Source: Guillardia theta CCMP2712
Taxonomy: Eukaryota; Protista; Cryptophyta
NCBI RefSeq assembly: GCF_000315625.1
Contig: NW_005434652.1
Span: 90,348 to 154,347 of the forward strand
Length of the DNA: 64,000 nt
Direction: 5' to 3'
Shown: positions 13,733 to 22,632 of the stretch, one piece after another
Numbering within the stretch: the stretch's first letter is position 1
Layout: each line of letters opens with the position of its first letter
Position numbers and translations under genes: made by a program
The notes under the pieces: generated by a model
Told to the model about the DNA's origin: nothing
The model's database searches: none
The model's input: only the letters and a program-made list of their open reading frames with translations

Positions 13733-14440
13733 CGCAATGCTCTAGTAGCTAGTATATGAATTATTCTCTTTATTGACTGAAACTTGAAAGAAGGGCAAAC
13801 CGGAGCAAACAAAGGAGGGGGAGAAATAGAGCCTACAAACCCGCCTCAAGAAAAAAAATATTTATTGACCGTGAAAAAAAACAGAGCAAAACTTGTCAAA
13901 CTTTTCAACGGTCTTTCATACAATATATATATATATTATATATCAGTTATATCCTGGGGAGGGGGGGGGGGGGGTGGTGGGGGCGGGGCCGGGCAGCCTG
14001 TGACTCAGCGGCGGCACCCTCCCGCCAGGCGGGCCGGCGGCTCACTCAGACGGTCACTTTGCCGCCCCGGCAGTGGTATGAGTGAGACGGCCACGGTACT
14101 ATGCCATCATGCCAGTGATCAATTCAGTCACGGTCAGAGCCTAAGGCGGGGTCACGGCCGGAAGTTAGCGCACGGTACCGGTGACTCCCCGAGTCCGCGA
14201 TCCGATCCGATCCGGGCCCGGGAGTCCGCGGCTAGTGTGGCCGCGGCGGTGAGTGAGCCGCTCCGCCGCGAGTCACCGTACTGCGGCCGCAGCCTCGGCG
14301 GCCAGCCAATCCTGGGGCCGCCCCGCCCCCAGGCTCGGAGCCGGCGGCCCGGGCGCGGGGCCGGGCCGCGAGGGGGCGGCCCGGCCAGACTCGGGTGACC
14401 GAGTCTGCAAGCTTGAATCCGACTGGCATCACGGTGATGT

Positions 14441-14829
14441 TGATGTTGCACCCGCATGACGTTACGTCAGTAACGGACATGGCAGCATCATGCGAGTAGT
14501 CGCAAGAGGCTACGTACGCTGGCGAGGTGTATAATGCTAGAATCGAAGATGTGTACTGGGCGTAGACGTACGTACAACACATTGGTATGATGAAAGCATG
14601 AGGCTGGTATAAACCGATACACATGTTTACTCATTGCTGTATTACGGGTTAAGCCTGACCTCGACATATAAGCAACCCATCTTAGACGTTGGCCACGTCA
14701 TCAGAATGGGATTGCACGAACATTGACGTGTGTTCTCTTACTGCTGTACATAAACAAATCTAGCTTCATTGTTCATCTGTTCTACTCCTAAGTGCACTAT
14801 CGCTCAGTTGCTGGACTATACCCGCATCA
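14441..14829 (+). repeat. 5' LTR
   Basis: Matches 21859-22247 base for base on manual comparison; TG…CA termini with 5-bp inverted ends. Confidence 0.97.
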
Positions 14830-14847
14830 GGTTATAAAAGCCTCGCG
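14830..14847 (+). promoter_or_regulatory. Primer-binding site, degenerate half-tRNA-iMet type
   Basis: GGTTATAAAAGCCTCGCG directly after the LTR; resembles the GGTTATG(A/G)GCCC PBS of copia elements primed by an internal tRNA-iMet fragment. Confidence 0.5.
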
Positions 14848-14859
14848 TTAAAGGAACAG

Positions 14860-15411
14860 ATGTCGCCATACCGTCTACAATGGCCGCCAATCAATCAGCC
14901 TCAGGACTCGATGATTACAGCAGTAACACCCGAGAATATGCAAAGACTTGCCCCAGATATCGAGAACTTTATACAGTTCGAGTTGATAGGGCAATACTAT
15001 GCATACCTCAACTCTGAAGGGAATCCAGAAAATATGAGAGCCTACTTCGATTGTCATTTTCCCATCAGAGATACTCAATCAGAAGAATTACAGGAAAACA
15101 TGAGACAGAAAAGGAGAGAATTTGTACGAGAAGCAGATGCTGCTTTGACGCAAATCCTCCACACTGTTTACATGCAATGCCCTGGCAGGATTCAGATTCT
15201 GAAAGCCCACATGGAAGAAGAACACAAATCCCCCGAGACACCTACAAAGCTTTGCTTAGCTGGGATCAAGGCATGGACAGACTTTAAAAGACTAGACAAG
15301 CCAACCGAAGCAACAAAAGCTGAACAGACCCTTGCCAATCTCAAACTCCGAACTAGAGCAAGCAGTAATCTACAACGGAGACTACCAGAGTTACATCCCC
15401 AATGTGGTTAG
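14860..15411 (+). CDS. Gag N-terminal ORF (frameshifted relative to the main polyprotein)
   Basis: ATG 30 nt after the LTR; 183-aa ORF overlapping the next ORF, which is in the +1 frame. Confidence 0.75.
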   Translation: MSPYRLQWPPINQPQDSMITAVTPENMQRLAPDIENFIQFELIGQYYAYLNSEGNPENMRAYFDCHFPIRDTQSEELQENMRQKRREFVREADAALTQILHTVYMQCPGRIQILKAHMEEEHKSPETPTKLCLAGIKAWTDFKRLDKPTEATKAEQTLANLKLRTRASSNLQRRLPELHPQCG

Positions 15412-18400
15412 GACCTTGAAGAAATTTGCTTCACAAGGCAAAGACTGCACTTTCATCTACACCCGTGCTTTCAAAGACGTTATCGACAACCTCAGAGCAA
15501 TCGACGAAACGGGCGTGCAAGCAGAACTGGGTAGTTGGATAACATCTCAAATCCATCGCAACGCAACGGAAGAAAATTTCTTCTACGAAGGAGAGCCACA
15601 GATTGAAGATTTTTTGAAATTCCATCAACATATGATGAACTTCACTACCAGAGGCACCAAACACCCAATACCTATCCTCCAAGCAGGACAAGATAGCTCT
15701 GGCAAGAAATCAACAGAAGCACATCATTCAGGTCAGAAACGAAAGGCGAACGCCGTGTTTTCAGCCTCCGTCAAACAAAACAATACACCACAGAAAATCA
15801 GGAGACAACAACAAGAAAACTTTACTGGATGCAAAATCTGCAAAGAAAAACGACTTCCAGCAAGGATTTCTCTCAGTCACGCTACCAGCGAGCATGACGC
15901 ATCTAGGATCGGAGAAAGAGCCACTGGCAATAAAACAGCGCCAACCATGAAGAGGATCACAGGAAGCATTTCAACCGGTTTTCAGACAAGGGCAGGAAGA
16001 TCCGCAAAATTTACTGCCAAGAGTCATCGCTCGTCGAACCCAAACCGTTCAAACGAGGAGAGCGGGCAGTACCCCAAGTCAAAATACAAGCAAACAGTCA
16101 GCATCGACAAGAAGGTCCTCGTGAACCTCACAAAAGCACTGCAAGAAGCCACCTCTACCGACCAAACTGAAACCCAAGAATCAGTTCAAGAATCACCTAG
16201 CAGTGATGAAGACGAATCCGATGAACCGTCCTCATCTCGAACACCTCCGAAACGACTGAAAGAAGTCGTAAAAGAGACGTTCCGAGGCACACTAGGACGC
16301 AGTTCTAGAAAGAATAAATCTCCCAAGGAGTATCCCTGTTCTAAAAATTATGTTGTATATCAAAGTGATACCAGGTCGAAAACTGAAGAGATCCAACTGC
16401 ACAAGCTTGATGCAGCTCTGTTCTCAAAAGTTTCAAAACCATGGTACCTTGAATACATCTTTCATATACCCAGACTACTGATCAGGAACACTGATCGGTA
16501 TCAAGTTTTCCTACACGCGTTAAAAGCGAAAGAACAACAAGAGTCCCTGTACGCTATTGTCGACTCAGGTGCAACTGTAAGCGTACTCTGCAATCCAAGT
16601 TGGTTACAGAGATCGTTTACACACAAAACTGAGATCACCGGCGTGGGGGGCAGCAAGATCAATACATCGCTCGGAGGAATTCTAGCAGGAACGATAGCAT
16701 CAATCGAAGGAAAACGTTTTGCATTTGCAACTATAGCAACAGTAATCAGCGACGAAAATGCTAAAATCAACCTGTTATCCATCTGGCGAATTACAAATAG
16801 TGGTCATACAATAATCCACAAAGGTAAACCAGAAGGAGGACTACACGGAATCATTACACTCAACAATGAATTTATACCTTTCTACTTCTGCCCAAGCACC
16901 TACCTATGGTACGTCGAAATCCAAAGACCCAACAGGAAGACCAATAAGATAATCTCCAAGCTATCAGCAAAAACCATCTGGGATAAAGACACAATTCTCA
17001 GAGAAATTCAAGAAGGCGAAATACCACTCACGGCAACAATCAAGGAGTCAACACATACGACAAATACACAAAGTACATCAAAACGCAGAATCCACCTGAT
17101 CATCCATGGCGCAAGATTGGAGAGCGTACCTCGTTGGGGGGGAAGCATCCACATCTACCAAGCTGCGATGCAGGGGGAGAGCACAACTTCGGCAACAGCT
17201 TTCAAGCCCACGCACATGAAGACCTTTCCTATCAGCATGCGAGATGTACGACCTGAATTAGACACGTCAGAAGAGTCAGACAGTGAAAATGGAGAGACCT
17301 TGGACAGTTGCAGCAGCTCCGATGACGAGCTGATGACTACTGACAACACTCCATTAGAACCTACAAGACAATTCACGACGGAAGAGATTCAACAGCAAAC
17401 CAAGGAGTATCTCAACGACCCAAGATCATTTACAGATTTTGACGACTTTACAAACACAACGATCGAAGAACTTGACGAAAACGACAAGGAATACGAAGAA
17501 CAATTGAAGAATGACAAATCAGATCTCAAGAATATTTACCTATATTCAACGGGAGAACGCATCAAAGGAACAAGAGCATCAGCGATTCTGCTCAAGTGGC
17601 ACGTAAGAACCAACCACATCGGCAAGAAATACCTTTTCCAACTGGCAGAAAACATCGAAGGCATGGAGGAATTGAAGAGAATCAATCCAAAGACACCCCT
17701 GCCGACATGTCACACATGCCGCAGAGCGAAAACCAAGGCAGCTCCATTACCAAAATTCAGACACAAAAGATCCGATGTCAGATTTCACAGGCTGCATGGG
17801 GATATGAGCTCCTATCGAGTCCGCTCGATCGAAGGAGCAAAGTACCTCCAACTCTGGAAAGACGACTTCTCAGGATTCAAGATGCCTGTAGGTTTAGCGA
17901 GCAAGAAAGGTTACAGGAAATCGTTACGACTTGTTGTCACGAGATTCAACAATGGGGTCTACCCCAAAGTGATTCGAGTTGACAATGGGAGCGAAATGGT
18001 TTCAAAGAAATCACTGAAGATGTACGAGAAGCACAACATCCACCTAGAAAGAAGCGCACCATATGAACATTGGCAAAATGGAAGAGCTGAATCTGGAATC
18101 TACTCGTTAGATACAAGGACTAGATTGGCAATCGTACACTCAAACGTTCCGAAAAATCTCTGGCTCAGCGCTATATATTACAACGCAGAGATCGAGAATG
18201 CATTCCTTCCTACCAGCAGAAACTCAAACATCAGTTGCTACCAAGCGTTTACAGATCATATCCTAAAGGACAGAAGATTAGATCAAAAGAAAGACAAAAA
18301 ACTCGAGCCAACAGCAGAAGTTTGCGTGTTTCTTGGACAAAAAACTCGAGCCAACAGCAGAAGTTTGCGTGTTTCTTGGCTTCGCCCACCACCTAGGAAT

Positions 18401-20989
18401 GAAAGGTTATTTGGCAGCATCAACGAAGAAGTATTCCCCTACAGATTTTCTCACCCGGAGGACAGATCTTGGAAAATACCATACGGCGGAACTGATGATT
18501 TTGGCGACGACAACGTCATTGTGCTCAAAAGAGCCGGTGAACGATTGATCGAAATGTCAGATACATCAGACGCATCAGATTCAGAATCTGAAGATGCCGG
18601 TGGAAACTCCAGCGCCCAACCTGAAGAGAGAAATCGACGACCGTTTACAGATCAACAACATGGCATAGCACACAATGATCCCATGGTGATCCAAGTGAGG
18701 CAACAAGCTATTGAAGTTGACAACCATCTCACGAGAACCTGTTCTGAAACATCAGTTGTAAGAGAGAGTGATATCACACAAGACGAACAAGTAGCGGTGG
18801 ATCCAGGACTATCAGAAAGAGGGCACATGAACCGTGAACTAGCCAGTCTTCAAGTCGAAACCTACAACAGTGGTGAAAAGGATTTTGAGTGGGATAAACT
18901 CACCCAAATACCTGAACATCAACTGAGGTCAGGACGAATTGTACAGAAGACGAATGTGGACACACCGACAAGTGATTCAGACCACGAAGACAATGATCTT
19001 CCAGCAGGAATTGAAGAGTTCGACAATCAAGACTTCATCAATGCGACACTACTTCCATCAGGAAGCACACTAGAGTTCCTTACGAACCTGGGCATCCCTT
19101 ATCAAGATCGCACCTTAACGAAGCGACAATACTGTGGAGTACTTGTCGACACATACAATAACCTGGAAGAGAAAATCATGACATGGTCACATGGGCCACC
19201 ACAACGAAACATGTACAACGAAAATCATTACAACGAAGAAATCGACAGCTTGATGTCTTTTCTTCAAGGATGCAAGAAAGATGAAAGAAGAGAATCAAGG
19301 ATACAAAAAGCTCAACTATTCTACACAGGCATGTTGTCGGCAACCAGCCATATCGCGTTTGACAATGACGAACCAAGCATCAAAGAAGCTCTCAACAACA
19401 ACAACCCAGAGAGACACCATTGGATAACAGCAATTCAGTCAGAGGCACGATCATGGAACGGACTAAAAGTATTCGAAGAAGTCGACAACATCCCAGACGG
19501 AAGAAAGGCAATCGGATGCAGAATCATCCTTAAAAGGAAAAGAGGACCGAATGGAGAAGTATTGAAATACAAGGCAAGAGCGATCATACAAGGTTACAAC
19601 GCGGTACAAGGGATCGATTACCTCGACTCCTTCTCAGCGACAGCGAACCCAATTACGATCAGACTCCTTCTGACAATCGCCAGAGCAAACAAATGGCACG
19701 TCAGATGTCAAGATATCTCAACTGCATACCTGATGGCACCACTTCCTACAGTTGTATATATCAGGACCCCAAAGGAATTTCAAGAGTTCTGCAACATTAG
19801 AGCAGCATACTTGAAGATCCTGAGTTCAGTCTATGGACTTCCTTCATCAGGTCGAAACTTCTGGAAGAAGCTCTGCCAAGACCTACGCGATTTCGGTTTC
19901 AAAGCCTGCACGTCAGATGATTGTTTGTTTCTATATCATGACGAGCAAGGGGGAGAGATCATCATCGCGTTAGTAGTCGACGACATCATCCAAGCTAGCA
20001 ACAGCCAAGCACTATTTGCAAAGTTCGACGACTTCATGATGAACACAAAAGGATACAGCGTAACAACCGACAACGATCTTAGCTTCTATCTGGGAGTCGC
20101 GTACAAGAGGGACGAAGCTGGAGACTTCATCAGCAACCAGCAAGCGTACATCGAAAAATGTTTGAAAAGATTCAACCTCGAGGGGATCGACCCTACAGGG
20201 AAATTCACCACGCCAATGGATCCCAAGTTCGTGATCGAACCAGAAGACGTTGATCCGCACGCGCCTGAAGACTTAGTCAAAATCTACAGAAGCCAAGTAG
20301 CAAGTCTGATATACATAGCAACATGGTCAAGACCAGAAATCAGCTATGCAGTATCATTGCTATCAAGATATCTCACAAGTCCTACGAAGAAACTGTTAAT
20401 GGCAGTGCACAGAGTATACGCTTATCTCAAGAACACCAAGACACTAGGAATCAGATACACCGACAACGACGACAACGGACACAAGAAAATGGAACTAGTC
20501 GCATTCTGCGATAGCTCAGACGCCGATTGCAAGCTCACAAGCAGATCAACCGGTGGATACGTCATTTTCCTCAATGGGACACCAATCTCATGGAAATCAG
20601 CAAGACACAACACAGTCTCACTGTCTACCATGGAAAGCGAATACATCCAAAGCACGCTTACAGCTATCGAGATCTTGTACTTGCGAGAGACGCTCGAATT
20701 CATGGGATACAAGCAACCTACGACGATATGCTATCAAGACAACGCCGCCTGCATCAAGCTCAGCGAGAATCCCGTCAGCAAGAGCAGATCGAAACACATC
20801 AAGAGAAGACACCATTTCATACGACAATGCGTTGCCAACAAGGAGATCACCTTGGAAGCAATTCATACAAGCGAGCAAGTTGCTGATATATTCACAAAAC
20901 CGCTGCCCGCTGATCAGTTTCTCTATCTAAGAGACCAATTGTTGAACCTCCCTGAAGCAACACGCTATCAAAGGAAAACAAAAAAGTAA
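15332..20989 (+). CDS. Copia Gag-Pol polyprotein (Gag C-term, protease, integrase, RT, RNase H)
   Basis: AIVDSGAT (protease); WHVRTNH…CHTC, RLHGD…RVDNGSE…QNGRAE (integrase); YKARAIIQG, LVVDDII (RT); FCDSSDAD, QDNAAC, RSKHI, QVADIFTKPL (RNase H). Confidence 0.97.
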   Translation: MPISNSELEQAVIYNGDYQSYIPNVVRTLKKFASQGKDCTFIYTRAFKDVIDNLRAIDETGVQAELGSWITSQIHRNATEENFFYEGEPQIEDFLKFHQHMMNFTTRGTKHPIPILQAGQDSSGKKSTEAHHSGQKRKANAVFSASVKQNNTPQKIRRQQQENFTGCKICKEKRLPARISLSHATSEHDASRIGERATGNKTAPTMKRITGSISTGFQTRAGRSAKFTAKSHRSSNPNRSNEESGQYPKSKYKQTVSIDKKVLVNLTKALQEATSTDQTETQESVQESPSSDEDESDEPSSSRTPPKRLKEVVKETFRGTLGRSSRKNKSPKEYPCSKNYVVYQSDTRSKTEEIQLHKLDAALFSKVSKPWYLEYIFHIPRLLIRNTDRYQVFLHALKAKEQQESLYAIVDSGATVSVLCNPSWLQRSFTHKTEITGVGGSKINTSLGGILAGTIASIEGKRFAFATIATVISDENAKINLLSIWRITNSGHTIIHKGKPEGGLHGIITLNNEFIPFYFCPSTYLWYVEIQRPNRKTNKIISKLSAKTIWDKDTILREIQEGEIPLTATIKESTHTTNTQSTSKRRIHLIIHGARLESVPRWGGSIHIYQAAMQGESTTSATAFKPTHMKTFPISMRDVRPELDTSEESDSENGETLDSCSSSDDELMTTDNTPLEPTRQFTTEEIQQQTKEYLNDPRSFTDFDDFTNTTIEELDENDKEYEEQLKNDKSDLKNIYLYSTGERIKGTRASAILLKWHVRTNHIGKKYLFQLAENIEGMEELKRINPKTPLPTCHTCRRAKTKAAPLPKFRHKRSDVRFHRLHGDMSSYRVRSIEGAKYLQLWKDDFSGFKMPVGLASKKGYRKSLRLVVTRFNNGVYPKVIRVDNGSEMVSKKSLKMYEKHNIHLERSAPYEHWQNGRAESGIYSLDTRTRLAIVHSNVPKNLWLSAIYYNAEIENAFLPTSRNSNISCYQAFTDHILKDRRLDQKKDKKLEPTAEVCVFLGQKTRANSRSLRVSWLRPPPRNERLFGSINEEVFPYRFSHPEDRSWKIPYGGTDDFGDDNVIVLKRAGERLIEMSDTSDASDSESEDAGGNSSAQPEERNRRPFTDQQHGIAHNDPMVIQVRQQAIEVDNHLTRTCSETSVVRESDITQDEQVAVDPGLSERGHMNRELASLQVETYNSGEKDFEWDKLTQIPEHQLRSGRIVQKTNVDTPTSDSDHEDNDLPAGIEEFDNQDFINATLLPSGSTLEFLTNLGIPYQDRTLTKRQYCGVLVDTYNNLEEKIMTWSHGPPQRNMYNENHYNEEIDSLMSFLQGCKKDERRESRIQKAQLFYTGMLSATSHIAFDNDEPSIKEALNNNNPERHHWITAIQSEARSWNGLKVFEEVDNIPDGRKAIGCRIILKRKRGPNGEVLKYKARAIIQGYNAVQGIDYLDSFSATANPITIRLLLTIARANKWHVRCQDISTAYLMAPLPTVVYIRTPKEFQEFCNIRAAYLKILSSVYGLPSSGRNFWKKLCQDLRDFGFKACTSDDCLFLYHDEQGGEIIIALVVDDIIQASNSQALFAKFDDFMMNTKGYSVTTDNDLSFYLGVAYKRDEAGDFISNQQAYIEKCLKRFNLEGIDPTGKFTTPMDPKFVIEPEDVDPHAPEDLVKIYRSQVASLIYIATWSRPEISYAVSLLSRYLTSPTKKLLMAVHRVYAYLKNTKTLGIRYTDNDDNGHKKMELVAFCDSSDADCKLTSRSTGGYVIFLNGTPISWKSARHNTVSLSTMESEYIQSTLTAIEILYLRETLEFMGYKQPTTICYQDNAACIKLSENPVSKSRSKHIKRRHHFIRQCVANKEITLEAIHTSEQVADIFTKPLPADQFLYLRDQLLNLPEATRYQRKTKK
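18293..18378 (+). repeat. 43-bp tandem duplication within pol
   Basis: GACAAAAAACTCGAGCCAACAGCAGAAGTTTGCGTGTTTCTTG occurs at 18293-18335 and again at 18336-18378. Confidence 0.95.
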
Positions 20990-21849
20990 TTCATACGATG
21001 ATTACCTTTGGTAATTTTCAAAATGAATAAACTTTTCTCAAACTTGTCTAAGATCCTTCGAAGGACAAAGACACATACGCGAAGTGCTGAGCACCTCTGG
21101 ACTGTTCTAGTACCAGGGAGTAGCATAGTACAAGCGAAACCATAAGCATGTGGCACAACTTGAGCATCCCTGGGGCATTGCGACTTCAGTGGGTAGTGAT
21201 AGTTGCTTGCAAACGCAAATGGACATGGGAGAAAGGAGTAAGAGTTTCATAGCACAGCTTCCCCATAGTATATGGGCTGATATGGTGACATGGAAACATG
21301 ATTGCTAATCAGGGCGATGGCGCGTAACATGATTTCTTTTGAAACATGGAAACGTACTCTTCGTTAACTCACCTCCGTGGGTAACCGGCGTGTAGCAAAA
21401 TGCTGCATAGCTGCTCTAAACTTCCATTGAAGCTAGTTGATGATGCGAAAAGCTACATCAGGGTTTGGAATTGCTTACCCCACACAATCAGCAGTGTGTG
21501 AAAGGCAATCCAACGTCTCGTTACCTCAAAAATGCTACACGCAATTCCTCACGTGCATCCACAAAATGCTACGAAGGAAACGTAAAAGCATGTGGAAACG
21601 ACGTGTTATGCTCACTGAAAGGCATATGAATGCATGTATGACTTTGGAACCTATGTCATTTGCTGAAACGTACCGGGAACTCACCGTCCTGGACCACATT
21701 TGCATTTTGGCTTCCTGCCATTTTCGCATTTTGTTGGTTAGTTCGCGAAGAGTCAAAGGGAGACCCTCATACAGCATCGGAGCCGTTGGGTCGATTCCGG
21801 TGTTGCATAAATCAATGCTCTCACGCAGTGACGACACTAAGTTTCGAGC

Positions 21850-21858
21850 AAGGGGGAG
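21850..21858 (+). promoter_or_regulatory. Polypurine tract (plus-strand primer)
   Basis: AAGGGGGAG immediately before the 3' LTR. Confidence 0.9.
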
Positions 21859-22247
21859 TGATGTTGCACCCGCATGACGTTACGTCAGTAACGGACATGG
21901 CAGCATCATGCGAGTAGTCGCAAGAGGCTACGTACGCTGGCGAGGTGTATAATGCTAGAATCGAAGATGTGTACTGGGCGTAGACGTACGTACAACACAT
22001 TGGTATGATGAAAGCATGAGGCTGGTATAAACCGATACACATGTTTACTCATTGCTGTATTACGGGTTAAGCCTGACCTCGACATATAAGCAACCCATCT
22101 TAGACGTTGGCCACGTCATCAGAATGGGATTGCACGAACATTGACGTGTGTTCTCTTACTGCTGTACATAAACAAATCTAGCTTCATTGTTCATCTGTTC
22201 TACTCCTAAGTGCACTATCGCTCAGTTGCTGGACTATACCCGCATCA
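21859..22247 (+). repeat. 3' LTR
   Basis: Identical to the 5' LTR; followed by the GATGT TSD. Confidence 0.97.
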
Positions 22248-22632
22248 GATGTCATGTACCGTACGGTCGTGATTCATTAAAGTAATGTCAACTTGTCACT
22301 AGCCGCGCCTGAGTCTGATCACAGTGAGTCCGATCGGAGATAGAATTTGAAGTACGGTAGCAGATAATCGAACGATCAGAGAAGTCGAGATTGTCGAGAG
22401 GAGTAAGCACACCAATCTAGTATTTGTAACATAGAACAGATCAACTACTTCTCAGAGTTTGTAGGCAAGCCGAGCCTCAGTACAGTTTTGTCATCGGACG
22501 TGACTCCTCCGAAATCTTAGTGTTATTAGTAAATATACTTCTCTCAGTAACTCAACAAGCCTCTACGAAGCAAGTGTCTGCTAAATTCTAGCATGCGGCG
22601 TGTGCGCTCTCGATCTCCTCCTACCATTCAGC

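Follow-up and report, generated by a model that had tools for sequence, protein, structure and literature searches.

The cis-acting RNA structures of LTR retrotransposons are known in depth mainly from the yeast elements Ty1 and Ty3 and from the retroviruses. The CTE of MPMV, the RTE of IAP, the MTE of MusD, and the RSV stability element are folded RNAs downstream of the last gene and upstream of the 3' LTR that act on the unspliced genomic RNA; none of them is known to pair with the leader. The region described in this study is like these elements in position, but differs from them in having no Rfam match and in having a candidate pairing with the leader. Ty1, a member of the same superfamily as the element studied here, also has a short complementary pair that connects the leader with a site upstream of the polypurine tract (PPT) and a structured 3' region, both of which are linked to replication (PMC7969010; PMC3681743, PMC3592414). 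However, the CYC5/CYC3 pair of Ty1 has no sequence relation to this element, and a function is proposed here by analogy. In addition, the 3' partner in the present element is situated within a ~370-nt multi-hairpin domain of a true 3' UTR, ~430 nt before the PPT, whereas Ty1 is almost without a 3' UTR. The Sireviruses, a group of plant Copia elements, resemble it in having conserved motifs and palindromes, specific to a lineage, downstream of the last ORF and ahead of the 3' LTR (PMC2829016). The role of these non-coding motifs is unknown, and they were defined by sequence rather than by covariation (PMC2829016). In contrast to the present element, which has no ORF in this interval, the plant-specific Sireviruses often contain an env-like ORF; the two were compared by description. 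As for antisense transcription, the Drosophila retrotransposon TART has an internal antisense start and its antisense RNA contains several introns (PMC1636488), and the antisense copy-number-control RNAs of Ty1 also come from an internal start (PMC3681743). The case described below differs from both in that it concerns an LTR element of the Copia type in an alga, in which an intact sense ORF is crossed by at least 13 antisense introns, and in that the first exon and the first intron of the antisense RNA overlap with a conserved structured domain. A literature search found no paper on Copia elements of Guillardia theta or on a similar element.

The window, a stretch of 64,000 nucleotides from contig NW_005434652.1 of Guillardia theta CCMP2712, contains an intact young Ty1/Copia element at positions 14441-22247. 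Its two TG..CA LTRs (389 bp; plus strand, 14441-14829 and 21859-22247) are 100% identical to each other, and the target site duplication GATGT can be read directly in the sequence on both sides of the element (14436-14440 and 22248-22252). Directly left of the insertion, the stretch 14300-14400 is extremely GC-rich, and a similar GC-rich flank lies beside the LTR of a distant relative, lineage G (L068, 1-300). The gag-pol ORF (plus strand, 15332-20989) comprises 1885 codons, in which Pfam recognizes rve at residues 820-912 and RVT_2 at residues 1380-1621, i.e., an integrase N-terminal to a Copia-type reverse transcriptase (RT). Between integrase and RT, gag-pol contains an exact 43-bp tandem duplication (18293-18378) whose length is not a multiple of three, with the frame still open; one RNA contig diverges strongly at 18211-18255 and omits 18336-18452 in this zone. 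A short plus-strand ORF that begins with the leader ATG upstream of gag-pol (14860-15411, 183 codons) overlaps the gag-pol ORF in the +1 frame, and a relative, lineage D, has a single continuous ORF of 2047 codons from its own leader ATG. The overlap may mark a site of frameshifting, or it may be damage in an element with identical LTRs.

Directly 3' of the 5' LTR, at 14830-14850, is a PBS-like sequence that begins with GGTTAT, as does the PBS of Drosophila copia, where it serves half-tRNA priming. At one place within it, family A, to which the element belongs, reads TATAAAAGCC, and families B and D read TAGAGCC; no primer tRNA partner for the PBS-like sequence was identified. At the other end, the PPT (plus strand, 21846-21858, gagcaagggggag) adjoins the 3' LTR and is invariant across the lineages. 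As pol stops at 20989, ~870 nt ahead of the LTR, the region of interest, 20990-21849, spans exactly the gap between the pol stop codon and the PPT.

This interval is non-coding. The preliminary description had noticed no convincing ORF between pol and the PPT, and the comparison between families agrees with it, as no ORF is conserved. Mismatches between family A and families B, C, or D show no preference for any of the codon phases (p 0.79-0.91; the same test on pol gives p 1.6e-41), and the indels between families are not multiples of three. Family A does contain a 146-codon ORF on the plus strand (21437-21877) and a 100-codon ORF on the minus strand (21535-21837), which might be taken for a decayed or accessory coding gene, either env-like or antisense, as found in some plant LTR elements. 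However, stop codons break both of these ORFs in B and C, and Pfam gave no family in the region at its cut-off or with a convincing E-value; the one weak match, of the 146-codon ORF to Pox_L3_FP4 (E 0.019; 14.5 bits, cut-off 25), is read as chance. We therefore regard a coding gene as extremely improbable, and indeed as already contradicted: with even codon phases, frame-breaking indels, and stops in B and C, the region does not align as a decayed protein-coding ORF, and an accessory or antisense ORF conserved between families is ruled out by the lack of a coding substitution pattern and of a shared ORF. Searches for known RNAs gave nothing in the region either, neither with Rfam (E<=1; the window element and lineages B, C, D, and G) nor, for tRNA-like genes, with ARAGORN, and the suggestion that the RNA is ribozyme-like is left without support from any Rfam family.

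The region had initially drawn attention because of the many stems that can be seen in its sequence. All of the stems listed at that stage could be located, either at the positions given for them or within a base or two. They include ATTACC/GGTAAT (21001-21006/21010-21015), CCAGGGA/TCCCTGG (21113-21119/21167-21173), CCCATA/TATGGG (21262-21276), CATG-GAAA-CATG (21289-21300), ACTCAC/GTGGGT (21367-21372/21377-21382), TGTAGCA/TGCTGCA (21391-21397/21401-21407), and CAGCATCGGA/TCCGGTGTTG (21772-21781/21797-21806), and the repeat GCATTTTG was found at 21702 and 21726. Folding energies proved less informative. Against dinucleotide shuffles, the whole 860 nt gave z-scores of -3.9 on the plus strand and -2.4 on the minus strand (20 shuffles), the conserved part (21228-21858) gave -2.5 and -1.9, respectively, and the spacer 20990-21227 gave -3.1. 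The region thus folds below its shuffled controls on both strands, but it is not separated in this respect from pol, as six pol windows of the same element gave z-scores from +0.1 to -4.8. Since coding sequence of the element reaches -4.8, thermodynamics alone does not single out 20990-21849, and on these figures the stems could be chance features of a neutral spacer.

Relatives of the element were found mostly in the same genome. Across the 87-Mb, 669-contig assembly, family A has eight copies with 97-98% identity, and one further family A relative (96.6%) is located on a JGI metagenome contig; this relative came from a metagenome pattern scan, the two other matches of which were judged to be chance. 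Lineage B is represented by two copies and a fragment, lineage C by a fragment without recognizable pol, and two more fragments, F and L011, also match the region, all in the same genome. Lineage D, with a polyprotein 80% identical, comes from an ENA metagenome contig, and lineage G, again from the same genome, was found by a covariance model only. Over the C-terminal 396 residues of pol, identity to family A is 82.5% for B and D and ~72% for G. Pol relatives at 40% identity had too little 3' flank, and gave no match to the covariance model. In one family B locus (L012:2400-2440; G000 C375), the PBS and leader (GGTTAGAGCCTCGCG...) directly follow the 3' LTR, an arrangement that suggests two tandem elements with one common LTR.

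In the between-family alignment, blocks of perfect identity alternate with variable segments from 21228 to the PPT. Identity between A and D in the region is 66%, compared with ~51% at the wobble positions of pol, which indicates that the region is under purifying selection. Conservation in five or six diverged lineages covers 21235 to ~21600 and a hairpin at 21772-21806. The first part of the interval behaves differently. The segment 20990-21227 (plus strand) is a variable spacer after the pol stop codon that has family A-specific stems, showed no conservation with B, C, or D, and hence gave no comparative support for a structure. In lineage G, the place of this spacer, after the pol stop and ahead of the structured domain, is occupied by about six tandem repeats of ~37-40 nt (L068 minus strand, ~2150-1860), and the pol of G contains frameshifts.

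The conserved part is organized as a series of hairpins. The first of these domains, R1 (plus strand, 21235-21360), is closed by a stem GGAGUA/UACUCU together with GUUUC/GAAAC, built from two invariant blocks, and encloses the hairpins H1 (21262-21276), H2 (21277-21312), and H3 (21329-21347) as well as a GCG/CGC mini-hairpin (21314-21323). On an ordinary MAFFT alignment that was not fitted to a model, RNAalifold predicts 41 pairs for R1, of which six are changed on both sides. When lineage G is added in a model alignment, the number of pairs changed on both sides rises to 9 of 41, compared with 4.0+-1.4 in shuffled alignments (none of 500 reached the observed value), and 96.8% of the cells are paired, compared with 92.7% in the shuffles; slid controls gave 0-3 changes on both sides and 36-49% pairing. 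At one position of H1 the full series C-G, U.G, and U-A is present. The long hairpin H6 (21526-21595), whose strand is ambiguous, shows the same behavior, with 8 of its 19 pairs changed on both sides in the unfitted alignment and again 8 of 19 in the model alignment that includes lineage F (shuffles, 3.8+-1.1, 0 of 500; slid controls, 0-3); 94.7% of its cells are paired. These shuffle tests for R1 and H6 used model-fitted alignments, and the covariation rests on five or six related lineages. With these bounds, compensatory changes exceed the shuffled and slid controls in both domains.

Between R1 and H6 lie Ha (21363-21385) and Hb (21386-21413; both on the plus strand), the invariant block 4 (plus strand, 21413-21441), H4 (plus strand, 21437-21463), and H5 (21465-21515), which has a CACAC/GUGUG core within a covarying outer stem and is ambiguous as to strand. 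MAFFT and RNAalifold lost Ha, Hb, and H4 once lineage G joined the alignment, and these hairpins were tested by folding the segments delimited by anchors. A strict column-wise helix scan was dropped, as 4-bp helices were too noisy. The segments that correspond to Ha/Hb, H4, H5, and H1-H3 form equivalent closed hairpins between the same anchors in A, B, C, D, and G despite their unrelated sequences, with Fisher p values for the single segments (combined for A, B, C, and G) from 1e-2 to 1.3e-6 (1.3e-6 for Ha/Hb on the plus strand; 3e-5 for H4, whose wobble variants function only on that strand). Further downstream, 21600-21771 consists of sequence-conserved blocks without conserved hairpins (Fisher p 0.14-0.7); these blocks may hold the promoter and 5' exon of an antisense RNA, or sites to which proteins bind. 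The last hairpin, at 21772-21806 upstream of the PPT (plus strand), has an equivalent stem with changed pairs in A, B, D, and C.

Taken together, about 370 of the 860 nt (21235-~21600 and 21772-21806) can be assigned to a folded RNA domain on the basis of covariation, which upholds the proposal of a large folded RNA in part; 20990-21227 and 21600-21771 received no comparative support. The latter two segments, and the pol windows with similar z-scores, are what a neutral spacer with chance stems would lead one to expect. However, the compensatory changes far above the shuffled and slid controls, the recurrence of the hairpins in five lineages, and an identity higher than that at pol wobble positions make chance highly improbable as an explanation of the region, and for 21235-21600 already contradict it. 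The domain was also described as cargo of the element; instead, it is an ancestral cis element common to a small Copia clade. Judged by sequence comparison, this conserved structured RNA domain is real and new, and its function we infer.

The use of G-U pairs indicates which strand folds. The consensus helices of R1 contain 32 G.U cells compared with 3 A.C cells, and the alifold consensus energy is -32.4 on the plus strand and -24.9 on the minus strand. In per-lineage folds of 21262-21463, G.U pairs make up 24 of 233 on the plus strand and 6 of 201 on the minus strand, and for Ha/Hb the numbers are 10 of 98 and 4 of 83. In H5 the bias is reversed (2 of 61 on the plus strand and 12 of 72 on the minus strand) and the hairpin folds better on the minus strand, whereas H6 folds about equally on the two strands. 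As H5 is reversed and H6 neutral, assignment to the plus strand is solid only for the 5' half of the domain. The early remark that several stems use G-U pairs that work only on the plus strand thus holds for 21235-21463, but not for H5 and H6.

The conserved domain also has a possible partner at the other end of the genomic RNA. Between families, the LTRs can be aligned only over their first ~13 nt and in a single internal block (14741-14776, identical to 22159-22194). This block contains CUAGCUUCA (22178-22186, and 14760-14768 in the 5' LTR), the exact complement of UGAAGCUAG in the invariant block 4 (21428-21436), and the 9-nt pair is invariant in A-D. Among the 7-mers common to A, B, and D (118 in the 3' region; 43 in the LTR end and leader), UGAAGCUAG/CUAGCUUCA is the sole complementary match, with a chance expectation of ~0.02 for a 9-mer. 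In lineage G, block 4 reads GGAGUUAG and the LTR reads CUAACUCC, so that two pairs are changed on both sides with the pairing intact; this covariation comes from a single lineage, the most diverged one. A transcript contig starts at LTR position 264, upstream of CUAGCUUCA, and extends past the leader into gag, with a TATA-like motif 30-35 nt upstream of this start, which suggests, rather than proves, that CUAGCUUCA lies in R/U5 of the genomic RNA. By analogy, the pairing looks like a Ty1-style 5'-3' cyclization. Several other candidate pairings were considered and rejected: block 1 has an 8-nt complement in the LTR (21237/14735), but lineage D has lost it, and chance alone is expected to give matches of this length; block 4 has a 7-nt complement in the PBS of B and D, but none in that of A; and local partners for GAAG (a CUUC hairpin and AGCUUC in block 1) show poorer compensation in G than does the motif in the LTR. 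When applied to long sequences, RNAduplex gave no useful information.

On balance, we lean slightly towards the view that 21235-~21600 and 21772-21806 form a signal in the 3' UTR of the genomic RNA that acts in cis in replication. This reading is favored because selection on the transposon acts at the level of such signals, because the wobble pairs of R1, Ha, Hb, and H4 point to the plus strand, and because the pairing with the leader covaries. In this model, the genomic RNA would carry, from ~240 nt past the pol stop, a structured 3'-UTR domain ending at the PPT, in which a string of hairpins (the multi-branch R1, Ha, Hb, H4, H5, and H6) is linked by invariant single-stranded blocks. Pairing of UGAAGCUAG with CUAGCUUCA in R/U5 would set the 5' leader beside the PPT-proximal 3' end. 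Such a cyclization may aid minus-strand transfer, and/or the domain may be a scaffold for Gag binding and packaging, with the invariant loops presented to Gag. The mode of action would be that of CYC5/CYC3 and the structured 3' end of Ty1 (PMC7969010). Three steps of this model are ones that we infer: activity of the domain in the sense genomic RNA, inclusion of the LTR motif in the transcribed leader, and the function in replication.

The same sense structure could also have a post-transcriptional role by analogy with the retroviral elements, either in nuclear export of the unspliced 7-kb RNA or in its protection from long-3'-UTR decay. The position downstream of pol and ahead of the 3' LTR, together with the series of hairpins and their invariant loops, would be suitable for such a role, the host splices heavily and has many short introns, and the pol stop codon is ~870 nt ahead of the LTR. 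However, there is no Rfam match, and the covarying pairing with the LTR would be left unexplained, and we consider a role in export or stability unlikely.

Four RNA runs were mapped over 16260-22250. The preliminary description had placed the fold in the genomic RNA, but in the one stranded run the RNA that covers the region is a spliced transcript of antisense orientation. The 13 joints listed all read CT..AC on the plus strand, corresponding to GT..AG introns of a minus-strand RNA with canonical flanks, and 19 further joints exist beyond those listed; there are at least 13 antisense introns, 45-280 nt in length, between 16418 and 21372 of the window. The same antisense joints are present in contigs of three studies and in stranded raw reads. 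In the stranded raw-read run, junction reads were 26:0 in one direction, which is taken to be antisense because of the GT-AG rule. Two of the minus-strand introns fall within the region: one of 203 nt (21170-21372), whose joint is found in contigs of three runs, encloses R1, and one of 54 nt (20952-21005) spans the pol stop codon. The first antisense exon covers at least 21373-21713 on the minus strand, as judged from a contig at 21406-21713 and from the depth table, and the variable spacer holds antisense exon 2 and parts of two antisense introns. Contig depth is highest at 21260-21659 and close to zero in U3 in two runs, which suggests that the antisense start is probably located between ~21715 and 21858. 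With contig depth near zero in U3, read-through genomic RNA was not seen. In the stranded run, of which ~6% was read, sense depth was 0 over 21060-21859, where antisense depth was 0.4-5.6. Within 16260-22250, sense depth in this run was appreciable only at the start of the interval and on the leader, being ~15 at 16260-16459 and at the leader copy 22060-22250 and near zero across pol (16460-20600). The sense RNA that was detected may stop after gag.

The splice sites of the antisense RNA can be followed into the relatives. In lineage D, at least 10 of the 11 introns that can be aligned keep the antisense 5' GT, the 3' AG is kept at ~8 of 13, and the antisense 3' AG at 21170 aligns with an AG in L013, D, and C. 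This retention is suggestive, but it overlaps with codon constraints. The antisense 5' splice sites GTAATC and GTGAGT are each located in one arm of a hairpin (21001-21015 and 21367-21382, respectively), and the opposite arms contain the sense-strand 5' splice-site-like sequences GGTAAT and GTGGGT (GTGAGT in L057).

The main rival to a genomic-RNA signal is that the conservation, or part of it (21373-21858, and H5 especially), serves this antisense unit. In that case, 21600-21858 would be the promoter and 5' end, H4-H6 would be structure of a first-exon lncRNA, the splice sites would be conserved as such, and the RNA would act as a regulator in copy-number control or silencing, either as part of the element's own equipment or put to use by the host. 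The 13 listed GT..AG joints with their canonical splice sites, their presence in three studies, the one-directional junction reads, the peak in depth at 21260-21659 with its drop in U3, the retention of splice sites in D, and the preference of H5 for the minus strand are all consistent with this proposal. However, R1, the best-supported domain, sits in an antisense intron and is specific to the plus strand, no ORF of the antisense RNA, once spliced, exceeds 107 codons or is conserved, the conservation of splice sites overlaps with codon constraints, and the most direct target of selection on a transposon is the set of cis signals in its genomic RNA. We therefore consider it possible, though rather unlikely, that the antisense unit is what the conservation serves.

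The two RNAs may also be interlocked, both being kept by the element: a sense RNA with a circularizing 3' UTR and a conserved many-intron antisense RNA that has its start, first exon, and first intron in this region and is possibly a brake on copy number. The antisense introns would survive retrotransposition, since only the sense RNA is copied, and, as the antisense RNA bears the same CUAGCUUCA as the leader, it could compete for the cyclization site. We put this forward as a tentative proposal of rather low probability.

The recognition of a large structured 3'-UTR domain and a candidate cyclization pair in a distant algal Copia clade was possible from comparative evidence alone. It suggests that genome circularization may be a widespread strategy of Copia elements, and the domain and the pair yield precise, testable mutations. 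At least 13 efficiently removed antisense introns over an intact sense ORF are unusual for an LTR element, and the antisense RNA offers a natural system for the interplay of antisense transcription and splicing with transposon control.
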